A stretch of 64,000 nt of DNA. It comes from Basidiobolus meristosporus CBS 931.73. Taxonomy: Eukaryota > Fungi > Basidiobolomycota. The first letter of the stretch is position 1; every line of letters begins with the position of its first letter. A model generated the notes under the pieces. It did no database searches, had not been told where the DNA came from, and saw nothing but the letters and a program-made list of their open reading frames with translations. The stretch lies in the NCBI GenBank assembly GCA_002104905.1, contig MCFE01000332.1:28983-92982 (forward strand), read 5' to 3'. The position numbers were made by a program, and so were the translations under genes. Positions 1 to 64,000 of the stretch are shown here, piece after piece.

Positions 1-726
1 CATTAGTTATCACAGATGTTATTCAGCTTTGTGATCTGTATATGTATCTACATTAGGCAAGTACCTGTGTCAGTACCCATGACACATGTCCTAAATCTGT
101 GCTACCATCCCTACCATTTAAATATCATATATGGTATCTCTGTGTTGCATACATTTCAGACTACTGATCCCTAGCTGGGTGGATGTGCTGTGTCTTTTAG
201 AACCTTCCAGGACATTCTTGGCATATTTTTAGCTCATATTGATGTCATCAAGAATTCCACTGATGCCTGGAATTTTCTAGAACCTTGTCATTAGTAATAA
301 CTTGGCAATCAGGAAAAGCATTCAAGGTAAGTCAATCAATCATCATTAAATCATCCCTTCTATCAGTAACACTTTACTTTTACTGATCAGCAGTTGATCA
401 CTGCACCTACCTTTAACAGTTACATCTCAGACTTGCCATCAAGGAGCTTTTCAGGGTAGTGCACAAGACACACAAAGGCCTTTGAAGACACTTAGAGCAT
501 ATTGGTAGCTAGAGAAGCAGGAGCTTTTACCATAGTGACATGTTAGACTTATTCCGTTGATAGTGCCACATAGTGCCAGCCGGTTTATAGTGCCGGATTG
601 ATCTGACACTCTACGGCACTATCTGGCACTATAATTTCTACCATTATGCCAGTGGTATGATACAGTTACTGGTAATTTTACTCAATCTTACTTATGTTGC
701 TCAGAATAGTGCTTTCCTTGCTTTAT

Positions 727-1611
727 TTACTCTTCATAATGCTCCAGACACATTTCTCTCAGTGGATGTCTTCTTGTATGAGCATACTGTGCATTGATAA
801 GTATCTTAACTATTTTACCTATTCTGCTGTTTTCTCCTATATATGACTTTCCTCTGTATTTACCTGCCAATATGCTGAATCTCTTCAGATATCCAAATGT
901 GTGCTCCACCCTTACTCTGAAATGATTAAATATCTCATTGTAGAGCTTCTGCTTCCTGCTAAGCACACCATTCCTTGGCTTCCTATAAGCTGTAATACAT
1001 CCTAATCTCTGACAATCCTCTCCTATATAGGCCAAGTCTGCCATACATTTCTCCCCTCTACTGAATTCAGGATGATTCTCTACCCAGAGTGCTTTGTCAT
1101 GCCTACTTCCAGCAAATGGCCCACTAAACCAGATGATGTTACCCTCAATGTCAGACAGTGCTGGAAACTTCACACAGTGTGCCTTGTACTTGCCAGAATA
1201 AAAGTGCCTCTGCCCTCTAGAAGGTCTGTTAATCCTCACTGGGAAGGTATCCAAAACACTCCTGATATGGAACCTGTTGCTGAACACTCTGGGATATGGA
1301 AGTCTATTGGAGCTTCCGAACCTAGTATTCCAAGCTTGCTCTAAGTCATTCATACCCTCTGCAAGGTGGTTCTCCATTGCTGTCAGCTGGGAATGAAAGC
1401 TTCTAGGACTTTTGTTGCCATGGATGGTGGGATGAAACCTTGTAGGGCAATAGTTCTTGTAATACCAGAGAAGCTTAACAAGGGATCTCCTTGAGTAGAT
1501 TGGGGTTGATGGTCCACAGTACTTGGAATAGATCTCCTCCAGTGTGTCAAAAGGAAATCCAGTGGTAGTGATGGGATTGATGAGAAAAGACCATTCAGAT
1601 GAGTAAGTCAT
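727..1611 (-). CDS. DDE_Tnp_4-family (Harbinger/IS5-like) transposase, 294 aa, intact
   Basis: Motifs LDTFPV (D), YSGKYKAHCVKF, GPFAGSRHD, MADLAY (D) and RVRVEHTFGYLKRF (E). Nearly identical to 62661-63545. Confidence 0.92.
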   Translation of the reverse strand: MTYSSEWSFLINPITTTGFPFDTLEEIYSKYCGPSTPIYSRRSLVKLLWYYKNYCPTRFHPTIHGNKSPRSFHSQLTAMENHLAEGMNDLEQAWNTRFGSSNRLPYPRVFSNRFHIRSVLDTFPVRINRPSRGQRHFYSGKYKAHCVKFPALSDIEGNIIWFSGPFAGSRHDKALWVENHPEFSRGEKCMADLAYIGEDCQRLGCITAYRKPRNGVLSRKQKLYNEIFNHFRVRVEHTFGYLKRFSILAGKYRGKSYIGENSRIGKIVKILINAQYAHTRRHPLREMCLEHYEE

Positions 1612-1970
1612 ATTAAAATTGATGGATGATCGTATGGAGGCGGTTTGAATTGATTCGGCGCGATCTGCGTTATTTATCTGATTTTTAACACATTATGGTT
1701 AAATCTCCATCAATTGCCATGTATCCCATCATTATGTCGCAAAAATCATCTGCAAACAATGCCTTGGTACTTTTATTGATGCTTTAATCATAGGTCTATA
1801 ATCAAATAGGAAATCTGCGATTGATGTGATCTGATCCGTGTCAACGCAATCCAAGATGCATCATGCATAATATATGGAAAATTCAACAATCACATTAGTT
1901 TTCATATATATTTCATATAAGACCAGGTTGATGCCAATATACTGCTGTATAAGTATCCAAATCCGTTGCT
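1612..1970. promoter_or_regulatory. Putative bidirectional promoter between the divergent transposase and ORF2 of H1
   Basis: ~360-bp AT-rich spacer between head-to-head ATGs (1611 minus, 1971 plus), conserved in H3 and H4. Function is inferred from geometry only. Confidence 0.5.
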
Positions 1971-2444
1971 ATGGTCCCCATACCAAGCCTCAACTCATCT
2001 TTAGTACAACCCAGACAAAACCCATCCCCCAGCTCACAAGCGCGGTCCGGACCGGAAAAGTCAATGTCAGATCCGTTTGAGTTCTCGCCAAATGATTTTA
2101 GTATGGCCCAAGTGTCTATGATGAGCCTTCATACAGATATTTGGGTACTACTGATTAATCTAGCAGAACTAGATACCTCAGAGAGTTGACAAAGATGGAA
2201 GAATTTGAGTAGAAAGCTGTGGCATGAGTTCTACATCAAGATGCCAGCTAATGTATGTAAAAAGATATATAACAAGACAAGTATTGAAATCAAGAATGAG
2301 CTGAGAGTGAGGGGATTTGACAAGGAAGCTGTGCGGGAACGATTTTGCGCGCAATTTGCACAGTACAGGCCGGACGCGTCCGTTTGTGCCTCAACTTTGG
2401 GAACCAAAGAGATTTTGAATGAGTTTTTGCCTCAAATGACTAAT

Positions 2445-3178
2445 AGACTTGTTCCGTTGGATAGTGCCACATTGAGCCATGTGTGCCAAATGATGCCATA
2501 GTGTGCCAGAGAGGTCAAGTGAGCCTATACTTGGCCACCAAGTGTGAAACATAGCTCTGCATCTTCATGTAAAGCAGCCCCTGTGTTTCACCCATTGCGC
2601 AGGAGAAAATCCATTTTTTGACCTTTTTTTGTGGATCAAAGTAGCTCAGGATGTGTAAGAGCACAGGAGAACTGAAGATATGCATCTGGTACTCAATACC
2701 CATGGCACTCTGAGTCTAGCTCCTGTAGCTTGTATCATGTCACAAAAATGAGCGGCACTATCTTGGTCCACTGGTACTATCTGGCACTATATTTAAATAT
2801 TAGCCCTAAAGTAAGATCTATACAAAGCACTTATAGTGCCAGATAGTACCAGTGGACCAAGATAGTGCCGTTCATTTTGTGACATGATACAAGCTACAGG
2901 AGCTAGACTCAGAGTGCCATGGGTATTGAGTACCAGATGCATATCTTCAATCTGCTTGTGCTCTAACACATCCTGCACAACATTGATCCAAAAAAAAAAG
3001 GTCAAAAAATGGATTTTCTCTAACACATTGGGTGAAACACAGGGGCTGCTTTGCATGAAGATGCAGAGCTATGTTTCACACTCTGTGGCCAGGTAGAGGC
3101 TCAATTGGCCTCTCTGGCACACTATGGTATCACTTGGCACTCATGGCTCAATGTGGCACTATCCAACGGAACAAGTCT
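2445..3178. mobile_element. 734-bp fold-back MITE M1 of the H family
   Basis: Ends AGACTTGTTCCGTTGG / CCAACGGAACAAGTCT. TSD AAT, with the empty site CAAATG(G/A)CTAATGTACT seen in H3 and H4. The 347-bp arms (2445-2791, 2832-3178) are inverted around a 40-bp loop. Confidence 0.93.
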
Positions 3179-3618
3179 AATGTACTACGTGATATATTAG
3201 TAGAGCTAAGTGGCTTCCAAGAACAATATACACAGGACTCATCCAGGCAACAGCTCCAAAGTATCAGACAGAGGGTAAGTGAATACCTTGAGGAATCAGA
3301 TGGTGAGCTTCAGGAGGAAGAATACAGACCGCAAGCAACATTGTCCAGATTGCGCCAGCACGCCTTGCTGGATTCCCTACCATCTCTTGCAACCACAGCA
3401 CGCCAGTGCACGTCAGTCCAGACCACGCCAACACCCTTTACCAGAACGCCCCACGTCAAGTCAATGCACGTCAGGTCAACGCGCGTGCTTCAGAGCAAAA
3501 CTACCAGAACTCGCCAAACTGCTCATTTAGACACAAGTCCATTGGAGCGGACCGAGTCACGTCAACATGCGGCATCACATCGAACTCAGCCAAGGGCCAT
3601 CTCAACGCGTCAAGGCGC

Positions 3619-4689
3619 TGTAGTGGGGTGACAGTGACACCCACTGACAGATGTGCTCATTCCCTTATTTTCTACTTCCCTATATCTCTACTACACTTAT
3701 TTTAGTTTTATCCCATTTGTCTTACCCAATCAGTACTATCCCATAAGCCGGTTGACTATCACACCTGCTTACCTTATTGCATAAGTTACCCCTCACTTTA
3801 TGTAAGATTACTAGCTATAAGTACTTCTATATTAGGCAAGTACCCGCGCCAGTACCCGTGACACATGATCAGCCTGCGTCACCATCCCTACCATTTCCAT
3901 ACCATATATGGTATCCCCATGTTACACAGGTTTCAGAATACTGATCCCTGATTGGTTGAATGTGCTGTGCCTCTTAGAACCTTCCGGCACCTACTTAGAA
4001 CATTCTTAGGTCATTCTGATGTCATTAAGATTTCTATTGATCTCTGGAACCTTCTGGAACACCATGATTAGTAATCACTTAGCCAGTGAGAAAAGTATAT
4101 AAGGGAGGCTATCCCTCAACAATAAATCATCATCCCTTTTATCAATATACCAACTTGTTGATTAGTGTGATCACTGCTACCTGCTGCTACCTGAACTTCC
4201 AACCCTAAACCACAGGACACTCCCAGGAAACCGCGCTGACAGCCAACTGACCTTAGAGGCACTACTTGTGAGGAATACTCAGAGTAGGTATCTTTTATTA
4301 TATTTGATTCTTTCCCAAGTTTGTTCTTGTACAGGCAAAGATACTTTTCTGTCTTTGTAACTATTGACCAAAGCTGCATTCTTATCAAGTCCCTGCTGGT
4401 GGAGTTTACAGTTGTTTTGACTTTGGAAGCTTTAGTACATTGTCATCTCAAAGGACGCTGAACCCAGCACATACTTTTGTTAAGACACCAACTAAGTTGG
4501 GGATTGTAGCTCAATAGTTTTCCCTTGACAAGCTTGTGGCTTTATTACCCTTCACATTAGATTAGAGACAGAACCCAAGTATCCCTAGCAAGCTTTTGCC
4601 AGAGGTTATTGCACCCAGTGAACACCCCACACACAAAACACTTGAGAAGTGTTGGACGTATCTCTCCCTTGGACTTATACACCACCACA
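3619..4689 (+). mobile_element. Solo LTR of gypsy family A (1071 bp)
   Basis: TGTAGTGGGG...ACCACCACA with 4-bp TSD GCGC (3615-3618, 4690-4693). The empty site CAAGGCGCGCCTGCG is present in H4. Homologous to the LTRs at 5891-6730 and 11396-12112. Confidence 0.9.
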
Positions 4690-6730
4690 GCGCGCCTGCG
4701 CGTGCCGTTTTGCCTGACCATCAGCAAGTTACTTCTGGTGAACTGACTGATGATGACCAACATGAAGTGACTCAACCACCGGAGCCCTTGGCAAGTAAAA
4801 GAACGCGTCAGCGCGTGGCACTACAGGCCAGTTCAGTTGGTTCAGTTGGTTCAGTTGGAGCGATTCAGCGCGGCCAAGCTGCAGCATAGCACTCATCAAC
4901 TAGGAGGCAAAATACTGACTACAAATACACAAGTAGCCAAGATGATAGTCAGCCAGGAAGTAGTATAGGTGTGCAAAGTGAGTCACTACCAAATGCTTCA
5001 GTAGTAATCCCTGTGAGAAAAAAACCCAGGAGAAGATGATGCGATTGCTTTGAATCGCTCACATTTGTAATGATCCCAACAACCCTTTTTTTTTGCAATC
5101 CGAATCAAGCCATTGCAAATCAGTGATCATCAAATTTTTGATATAAGTAATATCAAGGTTGTCTCACATTTGAGACAGAACCCCTATAAATAAACACCCT
5201 GCATATATATACGTCATCTGTAATACCAGTGCAGCTATTGGATCTGTTTTGCACCTACACGATCGCTTGCGTGCTAGCTATGACACCTTGCCCAATCACT
5301 AGGATCAGGGATTTACTTGCTCAATGGGCTAAATGGGATATTTGATGGCAAATCAGGTAGCTTTTTCAGTAGTCAATGAGCCAATTGGGGGCTGCCAGCT
5401 TCAGGATACTTTTGGACCAATTAACCACTGAGATACCGTCCAATTGGAGTGAGGGTAACCAAAATGGTAAGTATCAGTGTAGCTTATAGTGTGATACACA
5501 TTTATTTCCATTTACATTAAAGAAACATATCCAAATACCGGATTTTACCTGCCATTGTAGCGGTATCCGATCGCGCACGTGATGCAAGCATTACAAGTTG
5601 GCGCGATCATCCGCGCCAACCTCATCGTGTCAGATTGTGCCATAGTGTGCAAGATTGTCCCGCATAGTGCAAAATTGTCCAAGAACAATCCTGCCTTCTG
5701 GTAGCTATTATATTGCGCCCAATCGTTCTTTGCAACCGCAGATTGCGCCGCGCGCCCTGGCACGGTACGGTGGAACAAGTCTGTTGACAGAGACATCAGC
5801 AGTTTGGAAACAGAGGTTATTGCACCCATCAGACACCTGACACACCTTGAGTTGTGTAGCTTCTCCCAGGAATACCTCTACAACACCACAGCATCCCTTG
5901 AGATGACAATGTACTAAAGCTTTCAAAGTCAAAACAACTGTGAACTGCACCAGAAGGGACTTGATAAGAATGCAGCTGCGGTCAATAGTCACAAAGACAG
6001 AATAGTATCTTTGCCTGAATCAGAACAAATGTGGGAAAGAATCAAATATAATAAAAGATACCTACTCTGAGTATTCCTCACAAGTAGTGCCTCCAAGGTC
6101 AGTTGGCTATCAGCATGGTTTCCTGGGAGTGTCCTGTGGTCTGGGATTGAAAGTTCAAGTAGCAGCAGGTAGCAGTGATCACACTAATCAACGAGTTGAT
6201 ATATTGATAAAAGGGATGATGATTTATTGTTGAGGGCTTGCCTCCCTTATATACTTTTCTCACTGGTTAACTGATTACTATTCATGTTGTTCCAGAAGAT
6301 TCCAGATATCAATAGAAATATTAATGACATCAGAATGAGCTAAGAGTACTCTAACTAGGTGCTGGAAGGTTCTAAGAGGCACAAAACATCCAACCAATCA
6401 GGAATCAATAATCTGAAACCTGTGTAACATAGGGATACCATATATGGTATAGAAATGGTAGGGATGGTGACATGGTTTGACCATGTGCTACAGGTACTGG
6501 CACAGGTATTTGCCGAATATAGAAGCACTTACAGCTAGTGATCTTACATAAAGTGAGGGATAACTTATGCAATAAGGTAAGCAGGTGTGATATTCAGCCA
6601 GCTTATGGGATATTACTGACCAAGTATGACAAATGGGATAAAACTAAAATAAGTGTAGTAGAGAAATAAGGAAGTAGAAAATATGGGAATGAGTACATCT
6701 GTCAGTGAGTGTTACTGTGAGCCTGCTGCA

Positions 6731-27100: not shown

Positions 27101-27285
27101 AGACTTGCTCCATTGAATAGTGTCACATAATGCCAGCCTGTTTACAGTACTAGACTGATCTGGCACTCTTTGGCACCATCTGGCACTGTAACTTCTACCA
27201 TAATGCCAGTGGTAGGATATAGTTACTGGTAATTTTACTTAATCTTACTTATGTTGCTCAGAGTGTTGCTTCCCTTGCTTTATTC

Positions 27286-28100
27286 ACTCTTCATAATGCT
27301 CCAGACACATTTCTCTCAGTGGATGTCCGGTTGTATGAATGTGCTTTGCATTGATAAGTATCTTAACTATTTTACCTATTCTGCTGTTTTCTCTTATGTA
27401 TAACTTTCCAATGATTAAATATCTGATTGCAAAGCTTTTTCTTCCTGCTAAGCACACCCTTCCTTGGCCTCCTATAAGCTTTGATACATCCTAATCTCTG
27501 ACAATCCTTGCCTGTACAAGCCAAGTCTGCCATACATTTCTCCCCTCTACTGAATTCTGGATGATTCTCTACCCAAAGTGCTTCATCATGCCTACTTCCA
27601 GCAAATGGCCCACTAAACCAGATGATGTTACCCTCAATGTCAGACAGTGCTTGAAACTTAAAACAGTGTGCCTTGTACTTGCCAGAATAAAAGTGCCTCT
27701 GCCCTCTAGAAGGTCTGTTAATCCCAACTGGGAAGGTATCCAAAATACTCCTTATATGGAACCTGTTGCTGAAAACGCTAGGATATGGATTCATAGAGGA
27801 GCTTCTGAACCCGGTATTCCAAGCTTGCTTTAAGTCACTCATACCCTCTGCAGGGTGGTTCTTCATTGCTGTCAGTTGGGAATGAAAGCTTCTAGTACTT
27901 TTGTTGCCATGGATGGTGGGATGAAACCTTGTAGGGCAATAGTTCCTATAATAGCAGAGAAACTTAACAAGGGATCTCCATGGGCAGATTGGAGTAGATG
28001 GTCCAGAGTACTTGGTATAGATCCCCTATAGTGTGTCGAAAGGAAATCCAGTAGTAGTAATGGGAATGATGAGAAAAGACCATTCAGGTAAGTAAGTCAT
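27286..28100 (-). pseudogene. H2 transposase pseudogene
   Basis: ORF 27372-27866 is homologous to the intact transposase, with a deletion/frameshift near the C-terminus and stops in the N-terminus. Confidence 0.85.
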
Positions 28101-28313
28101 ATTAAATTGGTAGATGATCTGGCGTTGAATTGATTTGGCACAATCAGCTTTATTTACTTGATTTTCCATGCATTATGATTAAATCTCCATCAATTGCCAT
28201 GTATCCCCTCATTATGATGCAAAAATCATCCTCAAACAATGACTTGGTATTTTTATTGATGTTTTACTCAGAAGTCTATAATCAAACAGGAAATCTGCAA
28301 TTGATGTGATCTG

Positions 28314-28682
28314 TGTTGAAATATTGGACTATTTGGTATCATTCAGCAGCTAAAAATTTACTTAACAATTCTAGGCTAGTCTTAGTCACTGTAGGACTTA
28401 TTTACTGCCTTAATTTTGCCACTTTCTCCAGATATATGATCTTATGATTATTCCCTTATAGTCGGGATCAAATTAGCACTATTACCAAACATTATGTACT
28501 AACCCTGAAACTGTTACAGAATGCTCCTGAATATTGAGAAACCCTCCCTACTTAGTGTTGCAGCTGTATTACTTCTACAAAGGTATAAATACTGAGCTGC
28601 TTTATGAATAAACAACAGTTCAACTATTATCACTATTTCTTGATAAGTTCCTTGTATCCAAATCACTTCTTAAATTGCAACA
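28314..28682 (+). mobile_element. Solo LTR, copia family B
   Basis: TGTTGAAAT...TTGCAACA, 369 bp, homologous in reverse to 14699-14940. No TSD; the flanks are non-contiguous H sequence. Confidence 0.7.
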
Positions 28683-30199
28683 AGAACCACTTTCAGGTGT
28701 GCAAAGTAAATCACAACCAAATGCTTCAATAGCAATCCCTGTGAGAAAAAAACCTAGAAGAAGATGATATGATTGCATCAAGTTGCTATTATTTGTCATG
28801 ATCCAAACAACTCATTTTTTTTGTAATCCGCATCAGGGCATCACAAATCAGTGATCACTAAATTTTTGATTTAAGCACCATGGAGGTTGTCTCACATTTG
28901 AGACATGAGCCTATAAATAAACACCCTGCATGTTTATACATCATCTGTGGCACCAGTGCAGCCATTTGATCTGATTTGCACCTGTACAATTGGTTATGTG
29001 TCAGCTATGACACCTTGTCCAATCACTAGAATCAAGGATTTACTTGCCTAATGAGCAAAATGGGATATTTGATGGTAAATCAGGTAGCTTGTGTAATGAT
29101 TAAATAGCCAATTAGGGGCTGACAGCTTTGGGATACTATTGTACCAATTAACCATTGAGATACCATTTAATTGGAGTGAGGTAACCAAAAAGGTAAGTAT
29201 CAGTGTAGTTCATAGTGTGATATGCAACTTTTTAATTTACATTAAAGAAACAATCCAAATACCAGATTTTACCTACCATAATAGTGGTATCTGATTGCGC
29301 ACATGATGCAAAAATTACACGTTGGTGCAATCATATGTGCCAACCTCATTGTGTCAGATTGTGCCATAGTGTGCAAGATTGTCCCACATGGTGCAAAATG
29401 GTCCAAGAGCAATCCTGCCTACAGGTAGATACCATATTGCACCTGATTGTTCTTAGGGATTGCAGATTGCACTGCTCACCCAGGCATGGTACAATGGAAC
29501 AAGTTTACTATCCTGATTCCAGCATATGTTAACAGTTGTATGGTATTTATATCCAAAGATGCCACCATTGCAAGGCGTCCAATTTGTTCAGATCCACCAC
29601 CATAGAAGCAGCATAGATCTCAACAGATACTGTATCCATTCTCATTTTCATCTTGGACGGTGTATGGAAAATATTGGACCTTTCTTCACCATTTGGAAGT
29701 TTCCTATGGAGCAGATGTGTGGGGAGATAGGACAACAAGTGGAGTTGCAGGTAATACCATATCCCATCTCATCAGGAATCAAACCTTCAAGTCTGTCATG
29801 TTTGTGATGAATAAGCACATAGTGGACAGCCAGGAAGAGTTAGAAAATTCTGAGGACAGATGTGCACTTGAAGACACTCCTGCTTATGGCATTAAGAAAC
29901 TAAGCAGTTCCAATGAGTGAATAATCAGTTAAGCTATGCATGGTTAGATTGAACACAGCAAGCAACTAATTCTTTCTAGCGCAAATTTACTAAAGAATTC
30001 CACATTTCTCATGGTCACAAGTCAGCCTCTACACCACTTGATACGGGATTTACACAAGCAAGAGCTGTAGGCTACTGTTTGGTTGTTATAATACCAGCAG
30101 CAGTCTGCAATGAGGCCATCAGAGAACTGTCAGATTTAGGGCCATATTAGGCAACTGGAAGGATCAACTGGTTAGGACTGCTCAAATAAATGCAAGTAT

Positions 30200-31374: not shown

Positions 31375-31512
31375 AGACTAGTTCCGTTGGATAGTGCCAT
31401 ATACTGCCAGCCTGTTTATAGTGCCAGATTGATCTGGCACTCTATGGCACTATCTGGCACTAAAATTTCTACCATGATGCCAGTGGTATGATACAGTGAG
31501 TGGTAATTTTAC

Positions 31513-32442
31513 TCAATTGTATTTATGTTGCTCAGAATAGTGCTTTACTTGCTTTGTTAACTGTTCATAATGCTCCAGACACATTTCTCTCAGTGGATGT
31601 CTTCTTGTATGAGCATACTGTGCATTAATAAGTATCTTAACTATTTTACCTATTCTGCTGTTTTCTCCTATATATGACTTTCCTCTGTATTTACCTGCCA
31701 ATATGCTGAATCTCTTTAGATATCCAAATGTGTGCTCTACCCTCACTCTGAAATGATTAAATATCTCATTGTAGAGCTTCTGCTTCCTGCTAAGTACACC
31801 ATTCCTTGGCTTCCTATAAGCTGTAATACATCCTAATGTGTGACAATCCTCTCCTATATAGGCTAAGTCTGCCATACATTTCTCCCCTCTACTGAATTCA
31901 GGATGATTCTCTACCCAGAGTGCTTTATCATGCCTACTTCCAGCAAATGGCCCACTAAACCAGATGATGATACCCTCAATGTCAGACAGTGCTTGAAACT
32001 TCACACAGTGTGCCTTGTACTTGCAAGAATAAAAGTGCCTCTGCCCTCTAGAAGGTCTGTTCATCCTCACTGGAAAGGTATCCAAAATACTCCTTATATG
32101 GAACCTGTTGCTGAACACTCTGTGATATGGAAGTCTATTGGAGCTTCTGAACCTAGTGTTCCAAGCTTGCTCCAAGTCATTCATACACTCTGCAAGGTGG
32201 TTCTCCATTGCTGTCAGCTGGGAATGAAAGCTTCTAGGACTTTTGTTGCCATGGATGGTGAGATGAAACCTTGTGGGGCAATAGTTCTTGTAATATCAGA
32301 GAAGCTTAACAAGGGATCTCCTTGAGTACATTGGGGTTGATGGTCCACAGTACTTGGAATAGATCTCCTCAAGTGTGTCAAAAGGAAATCCAGTGGTAGT
32401 GATGGGATTGATGAGAAAAGACCATTCAGATGAGTAATTCAT
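31513..32442 (-). pseudogene. H3 transposase with premature TGA and lost stop codon
   Basis: The LLWYY codon TGG is mutated to TGA at about 32296. The terminal GAG TAA is mutated, giving read-through to 31513. Confidence 0.85.
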
Positions 32443-32803
32443 ATTAAAATTGGTGGATTATTGTATGGAGGTGGTTTGAATCAATTTGGCATGATCTCTG
32501 TTATTAATCATATTTTTAATGCATTATGATTAAATTTCCATCAATTACCATGTATCCCATCATTATGTTGCAAAAATCATCCGCAAACAATGCCTTGGTA
32601 CTTTTATTAATGCTTTACTCATAGGTCTATAATCAAATAGGAAATCTGCAATTGATGTGATCTGATCCGTGTCAATGCAATCTGAGATGCATCATGCATA
32701 ATATATGGAAAATTCAACAATCACATTAGTTTTCATATACATATTTCATATAAGACCAGGTTGATGCCAATATACTGCTGTATAAGTATCCAAATCCTTT
32801 GCT

Positions 32804-34051
32804 ATGGTCCCCATACCAAGTCTCAACTCATCTTTAGTACAACCCAGACAAAACCCATCCCCCAGCTCACAAGCATGGTCCGGACCGGAAAAGTTGATGT
32901 TGGATCCATTCAAGTTCTTGCTAAATGATTTTAGAAGGGCCCAAGTGCCTATGATGTGCCTTCATACAGATATTTGGGCACTACTGATTAATCTAGCAGA
33001 ACTAGATACCTTGGAGAGTTGACAAAGATGGAAGAATTTGAGTAGAAAGCTGCGGCATGAGTTCTACATCAAGATGCCAACTGATACATGTAAGAAGATA
33101 TATAACAAGACATGTATTGAAATCAAGAATGAGCTGAGACTGAGGGGATTTGATGAAGAAGCCGTGCGGGAACAATTCTGCGCACAATTTGCACAGTGCA
33201 GGCCTGACGCATCTGTTTGTGCCTCAACTTTGGGAACCAAAGAGATTTTGAATGAGTTTTTGCCTCAAATGGCTAATGTACTGCGTGATATATTAGTAGA
33301 GCTAAGTGGCTTCCAAGAGCAATATACACAGGACTCATCCAGGCAACAGCTCCAAGGTATCAGACAGAGGGTAAGTGAATACCTTGAGGAATCAGATGGT
33401 GAGCTTCAGGAGGAAGAATACAGACCGCAAGCAACATTGTCCAGATTGCACCAGCACACCTTGCTGGATTCCTTACCATCTCTTGCAACCACAGTGTGCC
33501 GGTGCACGTCAGTCCAGACTATGCCAACACCCTTTACCAGAGTGCCCCACGTTGAATCAACACACATTGGGTTGATGCGCACGCTTCAGAGCAAAACTAC
33601 CAGAACTTGCCAAACTGCTCATTTAGACACAAGTCCATTGGAGCGGACCAAGTTGGGTCAACATGCAGCATCACATCAAACTCAGCCAAGGGCCATCTCA
33701 ACGCGTCAAGGTGCGCCTGCGCGTGCCATTTTGCCTGACCATCAGTCAGTTACTTCTGGTGAACTGACTGATGATGACCAACATGAAGTGCCTCAACCAC
33801 CAGAGCCCTTGGCAAGTAAAAGAACGCGTCAGCGTGTGGCACTCCAGGCCAGTTCAGTTAGTTCATTTGGAGTGATTCAGAGCGGCCAAGGTGCAGCATT
33901 GCACTCATCAACTAGGAGGCAAAATACTGACTACAAATACACAAGTAGCCAAGATGATAGTCAGCCAGGAAGTAGTATAGGTGTGCAAAGTGAGTCACTA
34001 CCAAATGCTTCAGTAGTAATCCCTGTGAGAAAAAAACCCAGGAGAAGATGA
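32804..34051 (+). pseudogene. H3 ORF2, 415 codons with a single internal TGA (33020-33022)
   Basis: ORFs 32804-33022 and 33038-34051 are in frame. H4 has CAA at the stop position. Confidence 0.85.
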
Positions 34052-35840
34052 TGCAATTGCTTTGAATTGCTATTATTTGCAATGATCCCGACGACCCATT
34101 TTTTTGCAATCTGAATTAAGCCATCAAAAATCAGTGATCATCAAATTTTTGATATAAGTAATATCAAGGTTGTCTCATATATGAGACAGAACCCCTATAA
34201 ATAAGCACCCTGCATATATATATATCATATGTAATACCAGTGCAGCTATTAGATCTGTTTTGTACCAACCTAATTGCTTGCGTGCTAGCTATGACACCTT
34301 GTCCAAACACTAGGATCAAGGATTTACTTGCTCAATGGGCAAAATGGGATATTTGATGGCAAACCAGGTAGTTTGCTTAGTAGTCAATGAGCCAATTGGG
34401 GGCTGCCAGCTTCAGGATACTTTTTGGACCAATTAACCACTGAGATACTGTCCAATTGGAATGATGGTAACCACAATGGTACGTATCAGTGTAGTTTATA
34501 GTGTGATACACATTTATTTCCATTTACATTAAAGAAACATATCCAAATACTGGATTTTACCTGTCATAATAGCGGTATCCAATTGCGCACGTGATGCAAA
34601 CATTACAAGTTGGCACAATCATCTGTGCCAGCCTCATTGCGTCAGATTGTGCCATAGTGTGCAAGATTGTCCCACATAGTGCAAAATTGTCCAAGAACAA
34701 TGCTGCCTTCTGGTAGCTTTAATATTGCGCCCAATCATTCTTTACAACCACGGATTGCGCCACGCGCCCTGGCACGGTACAATGGAACAAGTCTATTATC
34801 AGGGATATTGGACTCTGACTGAAGCTACATATTGTGGTGCTACCCTATGAAAAATGGATTGGTCCTCCAGGTACATCCAATCTGGGTCAGCCATCAAGTT
34901 CCCATCAGGAGACAGCTATACTACCAGCAGCTTGGAATTAATGACCATCTACACAATCTTATGACAGGATCACAACAGTGTTTTACTAATTTACAACTAA
35001 ACAAAGTTGATAGAATATAATGGTATTTTTACAGTGTTTTGTCAAGGGTCACATGGCATTGTTGCAGTCTTAGTGCACTTTACAAATATTTGAGTAGATC
35101 TAACTGGCCAGTAAGTCTAATTGCCTTATGTGGCAAAAACCTGATGGTGCTTTGATAGCCTAATTACAAGTCTTTGACAGCATTATCATGGCAGTATGGT
35201 GGCCTACAGATAGATTTGTGTAATGCTACTACACCAATTTACCAAATGGTATTTCCTTTTTTTACCACCCCTTGCACAATTCAAATACACCAATGTAGAA
35301 TAACCCCCCTTTATATGCTTACCCATTAATACTGTGGGTATTCCACAGATAGTTTGAATCCAAAAAATATTAAGGCCTCCTGCTGACTAACCTCTACAAA
35401 CATGCACACCTGCCACAATTGACATCCTTCTATCACCTCAACATTACAGCTTTTCAGTGTGATGCTTGCCAAATTGCCATATACCTTGTATTGCTGGTAG
35501 CATATACATTATGTAAACATATGCCTGGCTTCTGCCACTTCTGCCATGTCTACCTCCTGAATATCTGCAAAGAGCTTTTTGGTATTTAGCCCTATATTTC
35601 TTCTCCCGGCTGGGGCCTAGTCCCCCTTATAGGTACACTCTGGCTCTTGTTAGTGTGAATTCTGTATTGTATGGTGTATAAATTGGCTTGTGTCCAAGAG
35701 AAATCTGGCATACTGTTGTAGAGCTTTGCTAATAAAATAAGTTGCTTGTTGAACTCAACCCAACATTGCATTACTTAACTGATTACCCATGCTATGGGAC
35801 TACTTGGCTTCTTAATGCAACAGGCATAGGTGTCTCCATG

Positions 35841-41058: not shown

Positions 41059-41792
41059 AGACTTGTTCTGTTGGATAGTGCCACATTGAGCCATGAGTGC
41101 CAAATGATGCCATAGTGTGCCAGAGAGGCCAATTGAGCCTCTACCTGGTCACAGAGTGTGAAACATAGCTCTGCATCTTCATGCAAAGTAGCCCCTGTGT
41201 TTCACCCATTGTGTTGGAGAAAATCCATTTTTTGATCTTTTTTTTTGGATCAATGTTGTGCAGGATGTGTTAGAGCACAAGCAGATTGAACATATGCATC
41301 TGGTACTCAATACCCATGGCACTCTGAATCTAGCTCCTGTAGCTTGTATCATGTCACAAAAATGCATGGCACTATCTTGGTCCACTGGTACTATCTGGCA
41401 CTATAAGTGCTTTGTATAGATCTTACTTTAGGGCTCATATTTAAATATAGTGCCAGATAGTACCAGTGGACCAAGATAGTGCCATTCATTTTTGTGACAT
41501 GATACAAGCTACAGGAGCTAGATTCAGAGTGCCATGGGTATTGAGTACCAGATGCATATCTTCAGCTCTCCTGTGCTCTTACACATCATGAGCTACACTG
41601 ATCCACAAAAAAAGGTCAAAAAATGGATTTTCTCCTGCACAATGGGTGAAACACAGGGGCTGCTTTACATGAAGATGCAGAGCTATGTTTCACATTCTGT
41701 GGCCAAGTATAGGCTCACTTGACCTCTCTGGGACACTATGGCATCATTTGGCACTCATGGCTCAATGTGGCACTATCCAACAGAACAAGTCT
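41059..41792. mobile_element. 734-bp fold-back MITE M2
   Basis: Same length and termini as M1 with the loop inverted. TSD ATT. Inserted in the CACTA transposase remnant. Confidence 0.92.
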
Positions 41793-45298: not shown

Positions 45299-45673
45299 GG
45301 CACTATAAGTGCTTTGTATAGATCTTACTTTAGGGCTCATATTTAAATATAGTGCCAGATAGTGCCATGCATTTTTCTGACATGTTACAAGCCACAGGAG
45401 CTAGATTCAGAGTGCCATGGGTATAGAGTACCAGATGCATGCCTTCAATCCTTTTGTACTCTTACACAGCCTGCACAATATTGACCTAAAAAAAAGGTCA
45501 AAAAATGGGTTTCTCCAACATAATGGGTGAAACACAGGGGCGGCTTTGCATGAAGATGCAGAGCTATGTTTCACACTCTGTGGCCAAGTATAGGCTCACT
45601 TGGCCTCCCTGGCACACTATGGCATCATTTGGCACTCATGGCTCAATGTGGCACTATCCAACAGAACAAGTCT
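45299..45673. mobile_element. Half copy of fold-back MITE (M3: loop plus one arm)
   Basis: Loop and arm match M1/M2. Ends CAGAACAAGTCT followed by AGT. Confidence 0.85.
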
Positions 45674-46330: not shown

Positions 46331-46422
46331 AACTCACCTACCTTGGTTTTCTCATGACAATAAGTGCCACTAGGTGCTGTTCTAAAGCTATCAGGAGGCC
46401 AGCAAGATATTGTTGGTGCCAT

Positions 46423-54271: not shown

Positions 54272-54995
54272 TGTCATGATCACATGACATCCTTGGTCTC
54301 CAATTATCTAGCCAAATCAAGTCAGTGAAGAAATCCCAGATCTGTCTAGAAAGTTCTACTACATTCTGGCAACTTCTTGAAAGCTCCAAGTCAATGTTAC
54401 ACAATGGAACATTCTATGGAAGCTTCTCATTAGAATTTATGTAGTCCCATGCCATATATGGTAGCTACATGTCACATGAACTAGTCACATGATCAGCTGA
54501 CCCCTGAGATATCTCCATGTGATATTCCAGTCTGTTCTGTAGTATATTCTCTCTTGGCACACTTACTGTGCCTCACCCCAGAACCCCATCAGTATTAGCC
54601 AATATCTCTTGGCATCCATATTGCCAAAAGGTATATATAAGACTTGTTCCATCATTCCAGCTGATCATAGTGCCCAATAGTGCCATAGCATGCCAGATGG
54701 TGCCTGATCATGCCACAGAGTGCCAGATGGTGCCATACAGTACCAATTTGGGATCAAAATTGACATGCATATGACCCTAAAATATCAAATTAATAACAAA
54801 ATATACAGCACTTTCTGGCACTATGATCAATGGCACAATGGAACAAGTCTATAGTCTTATCCCCCCTTATGTATTCCTCAGTCTGATAAACAAAGGTCTT
54901 GAATAAACAGCCTTGCCTGGTTGATCCTCACCTAAGTCCTTTCCTTGCCCTGCCTTACCTAGCCCTACACTCCTGCCTTGTGTCTATTCATAACA
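54272..54995 (+). mobile_element. Solo LTR of gypsy D, containing a MITE
   Basis: TGTCATGATC...CATAACA with 5-bp TSD GTCCC (54267-54271, 54996-55000). Confidence 0.9.
54640..54850. mobile_element. 211-bp MITE N of the H family
   Basis: AGACTTGTTCCATC...CAATGGAACAAGTCT with TSD ATA. The empty site GTATATATAGTCTT is seen in the LTR at about 36200. Internal (A)GTGCCA repeats. Confidence 0.9.
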
Positions 54996-56344: not shown

Positions 56345-56356
56345 GGTTATGAGCCC
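56345..56356 (+). other. Copia-type PBS (half-tRNA-iMet type GGTTATGGGCCC variant)
   Basis: GGTTATGAGCCC directly follows the LTR-terminal ACAACA and resembles the Drosophila copia PBS. Confidence 0.7.
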
Positions 56357-59300
56357 TAAGCTGTCACTCTCTTCAATGTATACTACTGCTATTACTGGAA
56401 CTTTTCCCTTTGCTGAAAAGTTGGATGGATCTATCTACAAAGTGTAGAAGGTGAAGATGAAGATGCTGCTACAAGAAAGAGGTCTTTGGGATATTGTCAT
56501 GGGAGAAGAATGCCCTCCTATAAGTGTGGGAGAGGAAGCCTTAAAGTACCAGAAGAAAGAACAAAGTGCCTTTAGCTGCATTTGCCTTAATGTCAAGGAC
56601 AAATTGCCAATTCATTGCTCAAGAGCAAATGTGGCTCAGAATGCCTGGAAGGTGTTAGAAGACACCTACCAGTCAGGTTCAGCTGCTAAGAAAATGTATC
56701 TGAGACAAAAATTCTTTACTACAAAGATGCTGCCAGGAGAACAAATGAAAAATCTAATTAGCGGAATTACCTTGCTGGTAGATGAAATGGAATCTGTGGG
56801 CAAACCAACTACTGATGAGGATGTGATATTACCATCCTGAATAGCCTGATAGACAAGTTTCAGGGCCTTGTATCAGCCCTAAAGTCCAGAACTGAATATT
56901 TGACCTTAAGTTATGTATATGGAAGGCTCCCGGATGAAGAATTAAGAAAATCAAGCGCCAAACAAAGGAAGAAGAAAATGCTTTAATAAGCAGTGACTGC
57001 CAACAAAGGAGATACCCAAGACCTTTTAAAGGCAACAGCAACCTTTTTTGCAACTACTGCAAAAGGAAAGGACACACATCTGACTGGTACCTCAAAGAGA
57101 AAGATAGCTAGCAGAAAAAGCCTGAATATGGAAATGCTGCAACAACTGAAGATAGACTATTCATATCTGCACTAAATATGACCACAAACAAGGATTCTCA
57201 GTCATCGTATATTGACTCTGGAGCATATCAACACTTTACACACCAAAAAGCACTCTTTGCACAGCAGTAGGACTCAATTTCAGCTTTAACAATTCTGGAT
57301 GCAGAATCACTGATCAAAACGGTGCCCATATTGCTTTGGGTATCAGAGATCAGAGTCTATACAAGTTGACTTATATTCCATCATATCTGGAAGCCAATAT
57401 ATGTAACTTAAATGTAGAAACACCAATGCTTTGGCACAGGAAATTTGAGCACATCAATTTTGATTATTTGCACAAAATGATCAAAGATCAGCTAATTTCT
57501 GGAGTAAAAATTAATCTCCCAGCTAATTTGGAGCACTGTGAAGCCTGCATATATGGGAAACAAGACAGACAATTGTTGAAGAGCTCAGGGTTGATCATAA
57601 CTAAGTAAAATTAGATCTAATTCACTCAGATCTGTGTGGACCTATGCAAAATTTATCCTAAGGCAGGATGAAGTATTTGATCACCTTTATTGATGATTAT
57701 ACAAGTTACACATAGGTCTACTTCATGGAGAGAAAGGAAGAAGCTCTGTCTAAGTTCAGCAAGTTTAAAGCCATGGTAAAGAGAGAGACTGGTGAAAAAA
57801 TCAAGAAAATACGCTCTGACTATGGTAGAGAATATACCTCGAAACTCTTCATCCACTTCAGCAAAGTTCATGGGATAAAGTAAGAGGCCACTGTACCATA
57901 CTCCCCACAGCACAATGGAGTAGCAGAACATGCTAATGGATCAATAGATGATATGGCAAGATCTATGATCCATGATCAAAAATTATCCTATGATTTTTGG
58001 GTGGAATCAGTTGCCACTGCTGCATACCTTAAAAATAGGAGTTATAACAGAATACTTTGAGATTCTACTCCATTTGAGGCATGGAATAGATATAGATCAA
58101 GTGCAGAACATCTAAGAATGTTTTGGTGTACAGCATATGCCAAGAAACTGCCTGGAGATCAGTCAAAATTTGAGCCAAAAAGTGTATAATGCAGATTTTT
58201 GGGCTACTGCAATGAGAGTAAAGCATACAGACTCTATAATACCAAAGCAAAGAAGCTAATCAAGTCCAGGGATGTGCTATTTGATTAAAATTCCAAATTT
58301 CACAAAAAATGACATCAGATGATGACAAAAGTCTGATCTCAAATCCACCAATTGTCAGAATTGAATCAGAGCAAAACTATGAAAGTTTTTTCACTCCAGA
58401 GAACTCTACAACCATGGTTCTGCCAGAATCAGTGCCCCAGAATACCTCAGAGGTGAACATTCCAGTATTAAATGCCTGGAGATCCAATCAGAAAAGAAAT
58501 AGCCCAAATTACTATATTAACAAGGGTACAAACTTAGCCTATGCCTATTCAGTCCATATTGATGAACCCCCAACTGTAAAAGAGGCCCTAAATAGCCCTC
58601 AGATGAAGTTTTGGAGATCTTCAATGACTGAGGAATATCAGGCTCTGATGGAAAATCAAACTTGGGACTTGGTCAAAATACCAATCAACCAAAAATCAAC
58701 TGGATACAGATGGGTCTTCAAGACAAAATACAAGGCTGATGGTACAATTGAAAATACAAAGCAAGACTTGTGTCCAAAAGATACTCTCAAACAAACGGAC
58801 TTGACTATACTAAGACCTTTGCACCAGTAGCCAAGTTTAATTCCATCAGATCGATATTGACTATTACAGCCAAATATCAGTTTTTTATTCATCAAATGGA
58901 TGTAAAAACTGCATTTTTGAATGGAGAACTTGATGAGGACATGTATATGGACCAGTCTGATGGGTTTGTTGACCAAGATAGCCCCCACTTGGTCTGCAAG
59001 CTTAAAAAGCCTCTACATGGCTCAAACAATCACTGAGAGTCTGGAATTGAAGATAAGCTCTTGTTTGGAATCTCTCAGTTTCAAAGGAGTAATGCTGACT
59101 ATAGTATATACTATAAGCCAGATAGAGCAAATCCTGTTCTATTTGCTCTATATGTGGATGATCTTATTATAGCTGCCAATAACCTAGCAACAATGGAAGA
59201 GACTAAATCCAGCCTATCTAAGGAGTTCAAGATGTCCAATCTAGGAGAACTCAGTTACTACTTAGGGATTAAGTTCTCCATGGACAGAAGTAGCCAGACT

Positions 59301-59901
59301 ACTACCCTAAGCCAATCCTGGTATATTTGAGATATACTAAAGAAGTACAAAATGGAAGACTGTAAACCAGCAGCTACCCCAATGGAGACAAACCTTAACT
59401 TGGTCAAAACTCAACCAAATTAAGAGAGCTTGGTGCCATCTGAAAGCCCTGACTTCCCTTATCAATATATGGTTGGCAGTCTGATGTATATCCTGCTTGG
59501 AACATGTCCAGTTATCTCATATTCAGTGGGAGTTGTCAGCCAACATAATCAGAACTATGGATCTGATCATATTGCAGCAGTTAAGCAGATTTTTAGATAC
59601 CTAAAAGGAACTGCTGATATCTGCTTAAGATACACTTATAAAGATTCAGAACAGGATCTTATGGGATACTCTGATGCTGATTGGGGACAAAATTTGGATG
59701 AAAGAAGATCCACCACAGGATGCACCTTTCTTTACTGTAAAGGAGTAATTTCATGGAATTCAAGAAAGCTACCAGCCATAGCACTTTCTACCACAGAGGC
59801 AGAGTATATGGTAGCCTGTGAAGCTACAAAAGAAGCAATGTGGCTAAGAAAGCTTTTCACAGATTTAGGCATATGTCAAAAAATGCCAATTACTTTATAT
59901 C

Positions 59902-60250: not shown

Positions 60251-61069
60251 ATATCAAGATAATCAAGGATGTACACAATTAGGTAGAAATCCAACTTTTC
60301 ATGCTAGAACCAAGCACATAGATATTAGACTTGTGCCATCATACCGTGCCAGGGCGCGCGGCGCGATCCGCGGTCGCAAAGAATGATTGGGCGCAATATT
60401 ATAGCTACCAGAAGGCAGGATTGTTCTTGGATGATTTTGCACTATGCGGGACAATCTTGCACACTATGGCACAATCTGACACAATGAGGTTGGCGCGGAT
60501 GATTGCGCCAACTCGTAATGCTTGCATCACGTGTGCGATAGGATACCGCTATAATGGCAGGTAAAATCCGGTATTTGGATATGTTTCTTTAATGTAAATG
60601 GAAATAAATGTGTATCACACTATAAACTACACTGATACTTACCATTTTGGTTACCCTCACTCCAATTGGACGGTATCTCAGTGGTTAATTGGTCCAAAAG
60701 TATCCTGAAGCTGGCAGCCCCCAATTGGCTCATTGACTACTGAAAAAGCTACCTGATTTGCCATCAAATATCCCATTTAGCCCATTGAGCAAGTAAATCC
60801 CTGATCCTAGTGATTGGGCAAGGTGTCATAGCTAGCACGCAAGTGATTGTGTAGGTGCAAAACAGATCCAATAGCTGCACTGGTATTACAGATGACGTAT
60901 ATATATGCAGGGTGTTTATTTATAGGGGTTCTGTCTCAAATGTGAGACGACCTTGATATTACTTATATCAAAAATTTGATGATCACTGATTTGCGATGGC
61001 TTGATTTGGATCGCAAAAAAAAAGGGTTGTCGGGATCATTACAAATGTGAGCGATTCAAAGCAATCGCA

Positions 61070-62301
61070 TCATCTTCTCCTGGGTTTTTTTCTCACAGGG
61101 ATTACTACTGAAGCATTTGGTAGTGACTCACTTTGCACACCTATACTACTTCCTGGCTGACTATTATCTTGGCTACTTGTGTATTTGTAGTCAGTATTTT
61201 GCCTCCTAGTTGATGAGTGCAATGCTGCAGCTTGGCCGCGCTGAATTGCTCTGACTGAACCAACTGAACCGGCCTGTAGTGCCACGCGCTGACGCGTTCT
61301 TTTACTTGCCAAGGGCTTCGGTGGTTGAGTCACTTCATGTTGGTCATCATCAGTCAGTTCACCAGAAGTAACTCGCTGATGGTCAGGCAAAACGGCACGC
61401 GCAGGCGCGCCTTGACGCGTTGAGATGGCCCTTGGCTGAGTTTGATGTGATGCCGCATGTTGACGCGACTCGGTCCGCTCCAATGAACTTGTGTCTAAAT
61501 GAGCAGTTTGGCGAGTTCTGGTAGTTTTGCTCTGAAGCGCGCGCGTTGACTTGACGCGGGGCGTTCTGGTAAAGGGTGTTGGCGTAGTCTGGACTGACGT
61601 GCGCCGGCGCGCTGTGGTTGCAAGAGATGGTAGGGAATCCAGCAAGGCGTGCTGGCGCAATCTGGACGATGTTGCTTGCGGTCTGTATTCTTCCTCCTGA
61701 AGCTCACCATCTGATTCCTCAAGGTATTCACTTACCCTCTGTCTGATACTTTGGAGCTGTTGCCTGGATGAGTCCTGTGTATATTGCTCTTGGAAGCCAC
61801 TTAGCTCTACTAATATATCACGTAGTACATTAGTCATTTGAGGCAAAAACTCATTCAAAATCTCTTTGGTTCCCAAAGTTGAGGCACGAACGGGCGCATC
61901 CGGCCCGTACTGTGCAAATTGCGCGCAGAATCGTTTTGCGCGGCTTCCTCGTCAAATCCCCTCACTCTCAGCTCATTCTTGATTTCAATACTTGTCTTGT
62001 TATATATCTTTTTACATACATTGGCTGGCATCTTGATGTAGAACTCATGCCACAGCTTTCTACTCAAATTCTTCCATCTTTGTTGACTCTCTGAGGTATC
62101 TAGTTCTACTAGATTAATCAGTAGTGCCCAAATATCTGTATGAAGGCTCATCATAGACACTTGGGCCATACTAAAATCATTTGGTGAGAACTCAAACGGA
62201 TCCAACATCGACTTTTACGGTCCGGACCGCGCTTGTGAGCTGGGGGATGGGTTTTGTCTGGGTTGTACTAAAGATGAGTTGAGGCTTGGTATGGGGACCA
62301 T
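61070..62301 (-). pseudogene. H4 ORF2 with a single 1-nt frameshift near 61940
   Basis: 1232 nt equals the H3 length (1248) minus a 15-nt repeat unit and minus 1 nt. ORFs 61855-62208 and 61070-61876 overlap in different frames. Confidence 0.85.
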
Positions 62302-62660
62302 AGCAACGGATCTGGATACTTATACAGCAGTATATTGGCATCAACCTGGTCTTATATGAAATATATATGAAAACTAAAGTGATTGTTGAATTTTCCATAT
62401 ATTATGCATGATGCATCTCGGATTGCGTTGACATGGATCAGATCACATCAATCGCAGATTTCCTATTTGATTATAGACCTATGATTAAAGCATCAATAAA
62501 AGTACCAAGGCATTGTTTGCGGATGATTTTTGCAACATAATGATGGGATACATGGCAATTGATGGAGATTTAACCATAATGTGTTAAAAATCAGATAAAT
62601 AACGCAGATTGCGCCGAATCAATTCAAACCGCCTCCATACAATCATCCATCAATTTTAAT

Positions 62661-63545
62661 ATGACTTACTCATCTGAATGGTCTTTTCTCATCAATCCCA
62701 TCACTACCACTGGATTTCCTTTTGACACACTGGAGGAGATCTATTCCAAGTACTGTGGACCATCAACCCCAATCTACTCAAGGAGATCCCTTGTTAAGCT
62801 TCTCTGCTATTACAAGAACTATTGCCCTACAAGGTTTCATCCCACCATCCATGGCAACAAAAGTCCTAGAAGCTTTCATTCCCAGCTGACAGCAATGGAG
62901 AACCACCTTGCAGAGGGTATGAATGACTTAGAGCAAGCTTGGAATACTAGGTTCAGAAGCTCCAATAGACTTCCATATCCCAGAGTGTTCAGCAACAGGT
63001 TCCATATCAGGAGTATTTTGGATACCTTCCCAGTGAGGATTAACAGACCTTCTAGAGGGCAGAGGCACTTTTATTCTGGCAAGTACAAGGCACACTGTGT
63101 GAAGTTTCAAGCACTGTCTGACATTGAGGGTAACATCATCTGGTTTAGTGGGCCATTTGCTGGAAGTAGGCATGACAAAGCACTCTGGGTAGAGAATCAT
63201 CCTGAATTCAGTAGAGGGGAGAAATGTATGGCAGACTTAGCCTATATAGGAGAGGATTGTCAGAGATTAGGATGTATTACAGCTTATAGGAAGCCAAGGA
63301 ATGGTGTGCTTAGCAGGAAGCAGAAGCTCTACAATGAGATATTTAATCATTTCAGAGTAAGGGTAGAGCACACATTTGGATATCTGAAGAGATTCAGCAT
63401 ATTGGCAGGTAAATACAGAGGAAAGTCATATATAGGAGAAAACAGCAGAATAGGTAAAATAGTTAAGATACTTATTAATGCACAGTATGTTCATACAAGA
63501 AGACATCCACTGAGAGAAATGTGTCTGGAGCATTATGAAGAGTAA
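62661..63545 (+). CDS. DDE_Tnp_4-family (Harbinger/IS5-like) transposase, 294 aa, intact
   Basis: Complete ORF with D (LDTFP), D (ADLAY) and E (RVEHTFG). Only a few residues differ from 727-1611. Confidence 0.93.
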   Translation: MTYSSEWSFLINPITTTGFPFDTLEEIYSKYCGPSTPIYSRRSLVKLLCYYKNYCPTRFHPTIHGNKSPRSFHSQLTAMENHLAEGMNDLEQAWNTRFRSSNRLPYPRVFSNRFHIRSILDTFPVRINRPSRGQRHFYSGKYKAHCVKFQALSDIEGNIIWFSGPFAGSRHDKALWVENHPEFSRGEKCMADLAYIGEDCQRLGCITAYRKPRNGVLSRKQKLYNEIFNHFRVRVEHTFGYLKRFSILAGKYRGKSYIGENSRIGKIVKILINAQYVHTRRHPLREMCLEHYEE

Positions 63546-64000
63546 ATAAAGCAAGGAAAGCACTATTCTGAGCAACATAAGTAAGATTGAGTAAAATTAC
63601 CAGTAACTGTATCATACCACTGGCATCATGGTAGAAATTATAGTGCCAGATAGTGCCGTAGAGTGCCAGATCGATCCGGCACTATAAACAGGCTGGCACT
63701 ATGTGGCACTATCCAACAGAACAAGTCTATTAAACATCATTCATACTTGAAGCTATAGAGAATAACTTAGTTAGCTTAGTTTACTGTCCTAAGATGAAAT
63801 GATTGCAGACATATTGCCAAATCATTAGCTAAAGACAAGTTTGAATATCTTAGGTCAAAATTAGGACTAGACAGTATGAATATTTAGCTGAGTGGAGTGC
63901 TGTGAAAATTTGTAATTCCACCTAAATACTCACCTAACTTAGTCACTTAGATCATTACCTTCAAATCCTAAAGAATACTGGCCAAATTCCTAGTTGGGAT

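Follow-up and report, generated by a model that had tools for sequence, protein, structure and literature searches.

Pangu is a group of the PHIS superfamily of transposons that was defined by Han et al. in 2015 (PMC4482050), who delimited the groups within this superfamily by the composition of the target site duplication (TSD). The TSD of Pangu is 3 bp long, ANT or AWT, and was confirmed by empty sites. The terminal inverted repeats (TIRs) are 11-40 bp in length and usually start with AG or GG, and the autonomous elements have a mean length of ~3487 bp (PMC4482050). Most families encode a DDE transposase without a further domain, together with a second open reading frame (ORF) without a known motif. 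Among the fungal members in Table S3 of that survey, the transposases have 268-487 amino acids (aa), the shortest being the 268-aa enzyme from Talaromyces, and the second ORFs 180-555 aa (PMC4482050). The fungal Pangu elements of the 2015 survey came from Dikarya only, and its genome list contained neither Basidiobolus nor Conidiobolus (PMC4482050). Pangu is the Harbinger2 group of Repbase (PMC12730594). Here we analysed a transposon family in a 64-kb stretch of DNA (hereafter the window), with the element at 60327-63728 as its reference copy. Every diagnostic feature published for Pangu was looked for in the sequence and found, and we put the probability that the family consists of cut-and-paste transposons of the Pangu (Repbase Harbinger2) group, PHIS superfamily, at about 80%. 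The family adds a member to a group already described; it is no novel type of element.

Used as a BLAST query against the window, 60327-63728 recovered every copy of the family, namely four autonomous-type copies (Ha to Hd) and four short derivatives (M1 to M4), which have common AGACTTGTTCC... ends. All counts of copies and TSDs given below come from this one window. The copies are the following.

60327..63728, plus strand: Hd, 3402 bp with both ends; ATT at 60324-60326 and 63729-63731
545..5782, minus strand: Ha, TSD GTT; 97.5% identical to Hd after removal of two nested insertions
727-1611: transposase gene of Ha, intact
ORF2 of Ha: broken by the miniature inverted-repeat transposable element (MITE) at 2445-3178 and the solo long terminal repeat (LTR) at 3619-4689, and by a TGA stop
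27101..29506, minus strand: Hb, TSD ACT; old, ~18% diverged from Hd and internally deleted
transposase gene of Hb: a stop codon and a 68-bp deletion
31375..34794, minus strand: Hc, 3420 bp, TSD ATT; 93.4% identical to Hd
31513-32400: transposase gene of Hc, with a stop at codon 49
ORF2 of Hc: TGA stop at 33020-33022
2445..3178: M1, a 734-bp foldback MITE nested in Ha; TSD AAT, with an empty-site control
41059..41792: M2, a 734-bp foldback MITE, TSD ATT; 88.6% identical to M1
45357..45673, minus strand: M3, a single arm of an M1/M2-like MITE, with AGT beyond the terminus
54640..54850: M4, a 211-bp MITE with TSD ATA and ~10 RTGCC(A) motifs

When up to 2 mismatches were allowed, the TIR pattern AGACTTGTTCCRTTG occurred 14 times in the window against 0.36 expected. 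The repeat consists of an 11-bp perfect core, AGACTTGTTCC, and an imperfect match that extends to ~25 bp. At Hd the terminal features are the following.

60327..60351, plus strand: left TIR with core AGACTTGT; Hd carries three changes in the first 15 bp; the first GTGCCA motifs are included
63714..63728, minus strand: right TIR, AGACTTGTTCTGTTG
63641..63713: subterminal array on the right, with TAGTGCC(A) motifs in either orientation

The left ends of the remaining copies read AGACTTGTTCCAYYGTACCGTGCCA. Matching 3-bp flanks were present at all seven complete elements (GTT, AAT, ACT, ATA, and ATT at three of them), and AGT follows M3, exactly as the original prediction had listed them. ANT was the TSD of five of the seven complete copies, plus AGT at the half copy; by base composition, ANT is expected at a random site with a probability of ~0.09. 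GTT and ATA are one-base departures from ANT that are the same on both flanks. ANT is a preference of the target, not a rule. The base preceding the TSD was T at six of the seven sites and the following base was a purine at all of them, which gives a T/ANT/R context in this small sample.

The element starts with A and ends with T, so that alternative parses of the TSD are conceivable. The boundaries might have been misread, with the element in truth a canonical member of PIF/Harbinger, ISL2EU or PHISTA and a TSD of TWA, AT or TA; the A at the start of the TSD and the T that precedes it at six of the seven sites would fit such a parse, and two distant relatives described below (L012 and L009) fit the TA reading. 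The paralogous empty site of M1, located in ORF2 of Hd and Hc, bears directly on the point. It reads ...ATGACTAATGTACT... and contains a single AAT, where the TA model predicts AATAAT. Because this empty site holds one AAT, the exact ends AGACTTG...CAAGTCT (AG...CT) and the 3-bp duplication are proven, and the AG...CT ends that had been proposed are upheld. The readings as a TA duplication with G...C ends and as a shifted TWA duplication are excluded by the same site, and the AT reading was rejected as well. Shifted 3-bp readings of the other copies gave TAT, TGT or a mismatch and never TWA, in agreement with the earlier statement that no TWA TSD occurs in the family. True inverted repeats were obtained only with the AG...CT ends, and neither HTH_Tnp_4 nor Myb/SANT was detected by Pfam. 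We consider misread boundaries extremely improbable.

Canonical PIF/Harbinger elements resemble this family in superfamily, in a DDE_Tnp_4-type core, in a 3-bp duplication, in having two genes of which one encodes an accessory protein, and in the presence of MITEs. Their TSD is TWA and their termini usually start with G, in contrast to the ANT and AG found here, and a Myb/SANT domain is part of their partner protein, while Pfam detected none in the present family. ISL2EU and Spy belong to the same superfamily and have a related DDE core. However, ISL2EU makes a 2-bp AT duplication and carries HTH_Tnp_4 (Table S2 of PMC4482050), and Spy, according to the title of Han et al. 2014, makes no duplication, while the TSD of the present family is 3 bp.

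TAGTGCC(A) motifs were enriched at the ends of the elements and in the MITEs, chiefly at the transposase-side end, and they fill the 211-bp MITE. The TAGTGCC array was also conserved in a sister family whose transposase is 63% identical, where the neighbouring spacer was not alignable. The motifs of the array are probably sites at which a protein binds.

Inside the TIRs, Hd contains two divergent genes.

62661..63545, plus strand: transposase gene, 294 aa, intact and intronless, with D121, D192 and E236
61070..62208, minus strand: ORF2, an orphan partner gene of ~415 aa when intact
62209..62660: spacer of 452 bp between the divergent genes, presumed to be a bidirectional promoter

The 294-aa protein matched DDE_Tnp_4 of Pfam at 8.7e-24; DDE_Tnp_1 was matched too, and no other domain was found. 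This bears out the description of a compact, intronless 294-aa DDE_Tnp_4 transposase lying head-to-head with ORF2, the two being separated by the 452-bp spacer. By its sequence, alignable with PHIS/IS5-type enzymes throughout the DDE catalytic region at E <1e-4, the enzyme is placed in the PHIS superfamily. An exhaustive HMMER search over 1.84 billion representatives, a kind of comparison that had been suggested as a check, returned 1693 relatives of the transposase, 289 of them at E <=1e-10 and 22 at E <=1e-30. The best match has 294 aa and is 63% identical, and the next ones are at most 43% identical. It is the transposase of the sister family (L002:188-1072, from run SRR949943, on which a literature search found nothing). 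An exact-sequence look-up with the window protein itself returned no record. A word-index protein search gave 3 matches with the transposase and 7 with a 28-sequence profile. Several relatives of 276-296 aa align with the window protein from residue 4-17 to residue 283-286, that is, end to end, and the short uninterrupted ORF is therefore the normal form in this lineage.

D121, D192 and E236 occupy invariant or nearly invariant columns of the alignment. An AlphaFold model of the transposase, built with a 28-sequence alignment, had a mean predicted local distance difference test score (pLDDT) of 93.1 and a predicted template modelling score (pTM) of 0.91, and its core had the order of strands and helices of the RNase H-like fold. 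In the model D121 lies in strand 1 (residues 115-127), D192 after strand 4 (187-190) and before a helix at 198-202, and E236 within the long helix 219-242. The three acidic residues are thus placed as Han et al. describe (PMC4482050). The 294-aa protein is, on the predicted fold and the conserved residues, a DDE transposase with an RNase H-like core. The PDB search found no solved structure related by sequence, and Foldseek with the transposase model gave weak matches only, to Tn5, ISCth4, Metnase and retroviral integrases. The first 110 residues of the transposase are helical. Comparison by hhalign with a transposase of the cyanobacterium Leptolyngbya, which has HTH_Tnp_4 and DDE_Tnp_4, aligned residues 9-273 at a probability of 99.5%, and by this alignment the helical N-terminal part is homologous to the helix-turn-helix region of IS5/ISL2-type enzymes; HTH_Tnp_4 and Myb/SANT themselves were not found in the transposase by Pfam.

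A quick IQ-TREE analysis of 94 proteins, with support from the Shimodaira-Hasegawa-like approximate likelihood ratio test (SH-aLRT), split the relatives at 95% into a clade of 24 and a clade of 70. The smaller clade holds the cyanobacterial enzyme, and HTH_Tnp_4 was found in 6 of its 10 members tested. The larger clade holds the window protein together with its 63% identical sister (99% support), and also P0012, which matches at E 2.9e-39 and has a C-terminal Chromo domain. Within the tree the window protein was grouped with other proteins of 276-296 aa.

The short, intronless enzyme, together with its remote homology over the whole protein to the cyanobacterial transposase and the fact that ANT is also a target of bacterial IS5-type elements according to Han et al. 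(PMC4482050), could suggest that a bacterial insertion sequence of the IS5/ISL2 type was acquired recently and spread in a eukaryote, a horizontal origin that the original prediction had raised. No match on a bacterial plasmid, however, exceeded 34% identity or covered more than 70% of the protein, and NCBIfam transpos_IS5_4 scored 53.1 bits against a cutoff of 140. In the tree the window protein is separated from the HTH_Tnp_4/cyanobacterial clade (95%) and joins the Chromo domain fusion. The two-gene layout is common to eukaryote-type relatives, and the codon usage suits a host that mutates CpG. Because of the low identity, the IS5 score below the cutoff and the separate clade, a recent bacterial source is unsupported, and we regard it as highly unlikely. 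Bacterial IS5 elements are homologous over almost the whole protein and use ANT-type targets as reported by Han et al. (PMC4482050), but they differ from the present family in a sequence identity of 24-34%, in family scores far below the cutoffs, in their position in a separate clade of the tree and in having a single gene instead of two. The similarity to the bacterial enzymes stems from an ancient shared ancestry of the IS5 and PHIS enzymes.

A conserved tryptophan-rich C-terminal extension of ~60 aa, unrecognised by Pfam, was present in many relatives (P0009, P0010, P0011, P0002, P0014, P0020, P0023, P0026 and P0040), several of them in the clade of 70; P0012 has the Chromo domain instead. 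The transposase of the window family has neither this tail nor a Chromo domain. The tryptophan-rich tail and the Chromo domain suggest that integration may be targeted to chromatin in the sister lineages. Eighteen relatives were found in a metagenome scan, on contigs mostly too short for both ends. Two of them, L012:173-3608 and L009:1203-4175 (28-32% identity), had clear TIRs, preceded by TAA and followed by TTA. These are best read as elements with A...T ends and a TA duplication, each being a single copy without an empty site. Distant as they are, and with TA in place of ANT, they are no guide to the group of the window family. The reading frame of L009 is in pieces, consistent with introns. 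At L003:25-3185, a nested element with 33-bp TIRs and an 842-aa protein (weak DDE_3 match) truncates the transposase of another relative.

ORF2 of Hd has a 1-bp deletion near 61937/61938, which shifts the frame, and a 15-bp in-frame deletion. The element at 60327-63728, which had been called complete, is complete in its structure, from one end to the other, but not in this second gene. Read across the copies, ORF2 encodes a helical region in the first ~160 residues, a long tail rich in S, T, R and Q, and a basic C-terminus (KKPRRR). No family or homologue of ORF2 was found by Pfam, by word search or by two ESM Atlas searches, and tblastn against the loci of the relatives gave no significant match. 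A single-sequence AlphaFold model of ORF2 contained three helices at low confidence (pLDDT 60.7), and Foldseek with this low-confidence model found nothing significant. A W-x17-W-x7-W pattern of ORF2 lines up with the ORF upstream of the transposase of L012, at a BLASTP E value of only 4.9. The contigs of P0162 and P0014 show, head-to-head with the transposase gene, an ORF on the minus strand that has no Pfam match.

Compared with Pangu as described, the family shares the ANT TSDs, the AG-starting TIR of 11-25 bp, the length of ~3.4 kb, the DDE_Tnp_4 transposase without an extra domain and the motif-less second ORF; fungal members of Pangu are on record from Tuber, Talaromyces, Tremella, Melampsora and Puccinia. 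The family differs in the host lineage, new to the group should Basidiobolus (Zoopagomycota) be the host, in the two of seven TSDs that are not ANT, and in a CpG-free transposase gene, a trait undescribed for Pangu. Since the groups of Han et al. are defined by TSD composition, the family is Pangu by their rule. The identification as a Pangu-type PHIS element, which was the main proposal of the original prediction, agrees with PMC4482050 in TSD, AG start, size, bare transposase and motif-less ORF2.

The family might instead represent a separate, unnamed PHIS lineage with a compact transposase (~290 aa) that converged on ANT targets and is distinct from the Pangu/Harbinger2 clade. Its closest proteins are unnamed sequences from metagenomes and the Sequence Read Archive (SRA), 63% and then at most 43% identical; the window protein clusters with proteins of 276-296 aa, the TSD type is seemingly variable among the distant relatives, and Pangu entered the comparison through its published description. 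A compact enzyme is nevertheless within the range of the group, as the fungal Pangu enzyme of Talaromyces has just 268 aa; all diagnostic features of Pangu are present, and grouping by TSD composition, as practised by Han et al., makes the family Pangu. We therefore give a separate lineage a rather low probability, and the new lineage that had been offered as the alternative to Pangu is not needed, the data being explained by Pangu features.

Five points weigh against the assignment to Pangu or limit what follows from it. Membership follows the TSD-based definition of the authors of the group, and a place within the Pangu clade is presumptive. The TSD type seems not to be uniform across the clade of 70, as judged by the apparent TA duplications of L012 and L009. 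GTT and ATA, two of the seven TSDs, depart from ANT, in a small sample from one 64-kb window. Each of the four copies in the window has at least one damaged gene, and any current activity of the family is hypothetical. Finally, the role of ORF2 is pure analogy; no DNA-binding or other fold could be demonstrated in it.

The copies differ in age and in the manner of their decay. In the alignment of Hd and Ha (3401 bases), 84 positions differed (2.5%), and 43 of these were transitions in CpG context; the non-CpG divergence was 1.2%. The divergence was 0.9% in the transposase gene and 3.2% in ORF2, that is, ~3 times slower in the former, and the two transposases had five amino-acid differences. 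Outside the transposase gene, the observed/expected ratio of CpG was 0.81 in Hd, 0.76 in Ha, 0.39 in Hc and 0.11 in Hb, a drop that parallels the order of divergence. Together these values show an age series, with Hd and Ha young, Hc older and Hb old. To call the family apparently recent, as had been done, is justified for Hd and Ha when they are set against the remainder of the window, given their low divergence and high CpG content.

The transposase ORF contains no CpG in Hd (885 bp), one in Ha and none in Hc. All 28 arginines of the Hd transposase are encoded by AGA or AGG, and shuffling of its codon order gave a mean of 14 CpGs and a minimum of 5. The sister family L002 likewise has a single CpG in the ORF (observed/expected 0.03), against a ratio of 0.73 in its flanks. 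Three copies of the family make up 16% of the window and contain 62% of its CpGs. At codon 62083-62085 of ORF2, Hd has CAA while Ha and Hc (33020-33022) have TGA, the pattern expected if an ancestral CGA had decayed on either strand. These comparisons show that the copies decay mainly by transitions of CpG to TpG or CpA, which reach ORF2 but are unable to strike the CpG-free transposase gene; the stop codons in ORF2 show how this process disables the partner gene. It is tempting, though we hold the idea with more doubt than confidence, to suppose that the lineage may have evolved a CpG-free transposase gene which escapes CpG-directed repeat decay by the host, with the partner gene and the ends still CpG-rich. 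Further transposon ORFs in the window are CpG-poor too, with observed/expected ratios of 0.09 (Ty3) and 0.03 (tnp2).

The window as a whole has 40.9% G+C and a CpG observed/expected ratio of 0.14, and it consists of transposon remains almost throughout. The family thus sits in a eukaryotic genome rich in repeats and heavily depleted of CpG. The main features outside the family are the following.

3619-4689: solo LTR (TG...CA, ~1.07 kb) in ORF2 of Ha, with a 4-bp duplication GCGC according to the empty site in Hd
5889-6730: second, inverted copy of this LTR, adjoining an integrase-like ORF at 6770-7546
19527-22196: 889-aa Ty3/gypsy ORF with gag, protease, reverse transcriptase and RNase H
43637-49693 and 50256-50999: large inverted duplication with arms of ~1.6 kb and 80-86% identity, beside an EnSpm/CACTA-type Transposase_21 ORF
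53078-59857: palindromic structure of ~6.8 kb, with outer arms of 1107 nt that are 98% complementary and nested inverted arms inside; M4 is present in one arm only

A "huge expansion of PIF-Harbinger" was reported for Basidiobolus (PMC5751038), and the mixture of PIF/Harbinger-type and EnSpm-type elements in the window is consistent with that account.

With the family read as Pangu, we propose that the transposase would recognise the 11-25-bp TIRs (AGACTTGTTCC...); the subterminal TAGTGCC arrays are probably recognised as well. The enzyme would excise the element and reinsert it through a 3-nt staggered cut at A-N-T targets, by which three bases would be duplicated. On the model of the second protein in PIF/Harbinger elements, ORF2 may be an accessory factor for end binding, nuclear import or both. 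The 734-bp foldbacks and the 211-bp MITE, which keep only the ends and the binding motifs, would be moved in trans.

To our knowledge, Pangu/Harbinger2 is known solely through a single bioinformatic survey and the entries in Repbase, and we know of no member that has been shown to transpose. With exact ends fixed by an empty site and with intact transposase genes, the present family is well suited to a first test of function in the group, and it also offers a conserved array of candidate binding sites and a 211-bp MITE as a possible donor. The result is an annotation and not the discovery of a new mechanism. Should the CpG-free state of the transposase gene be adaptive, the transposon would encode a mutational robustness of its own. 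If Basidiobolus is the host, the range of Pangu would reach to the early-diverging fungi, and the family would help to explain the expansion of PIF-Harbinger described for that genus (PMC5751038).

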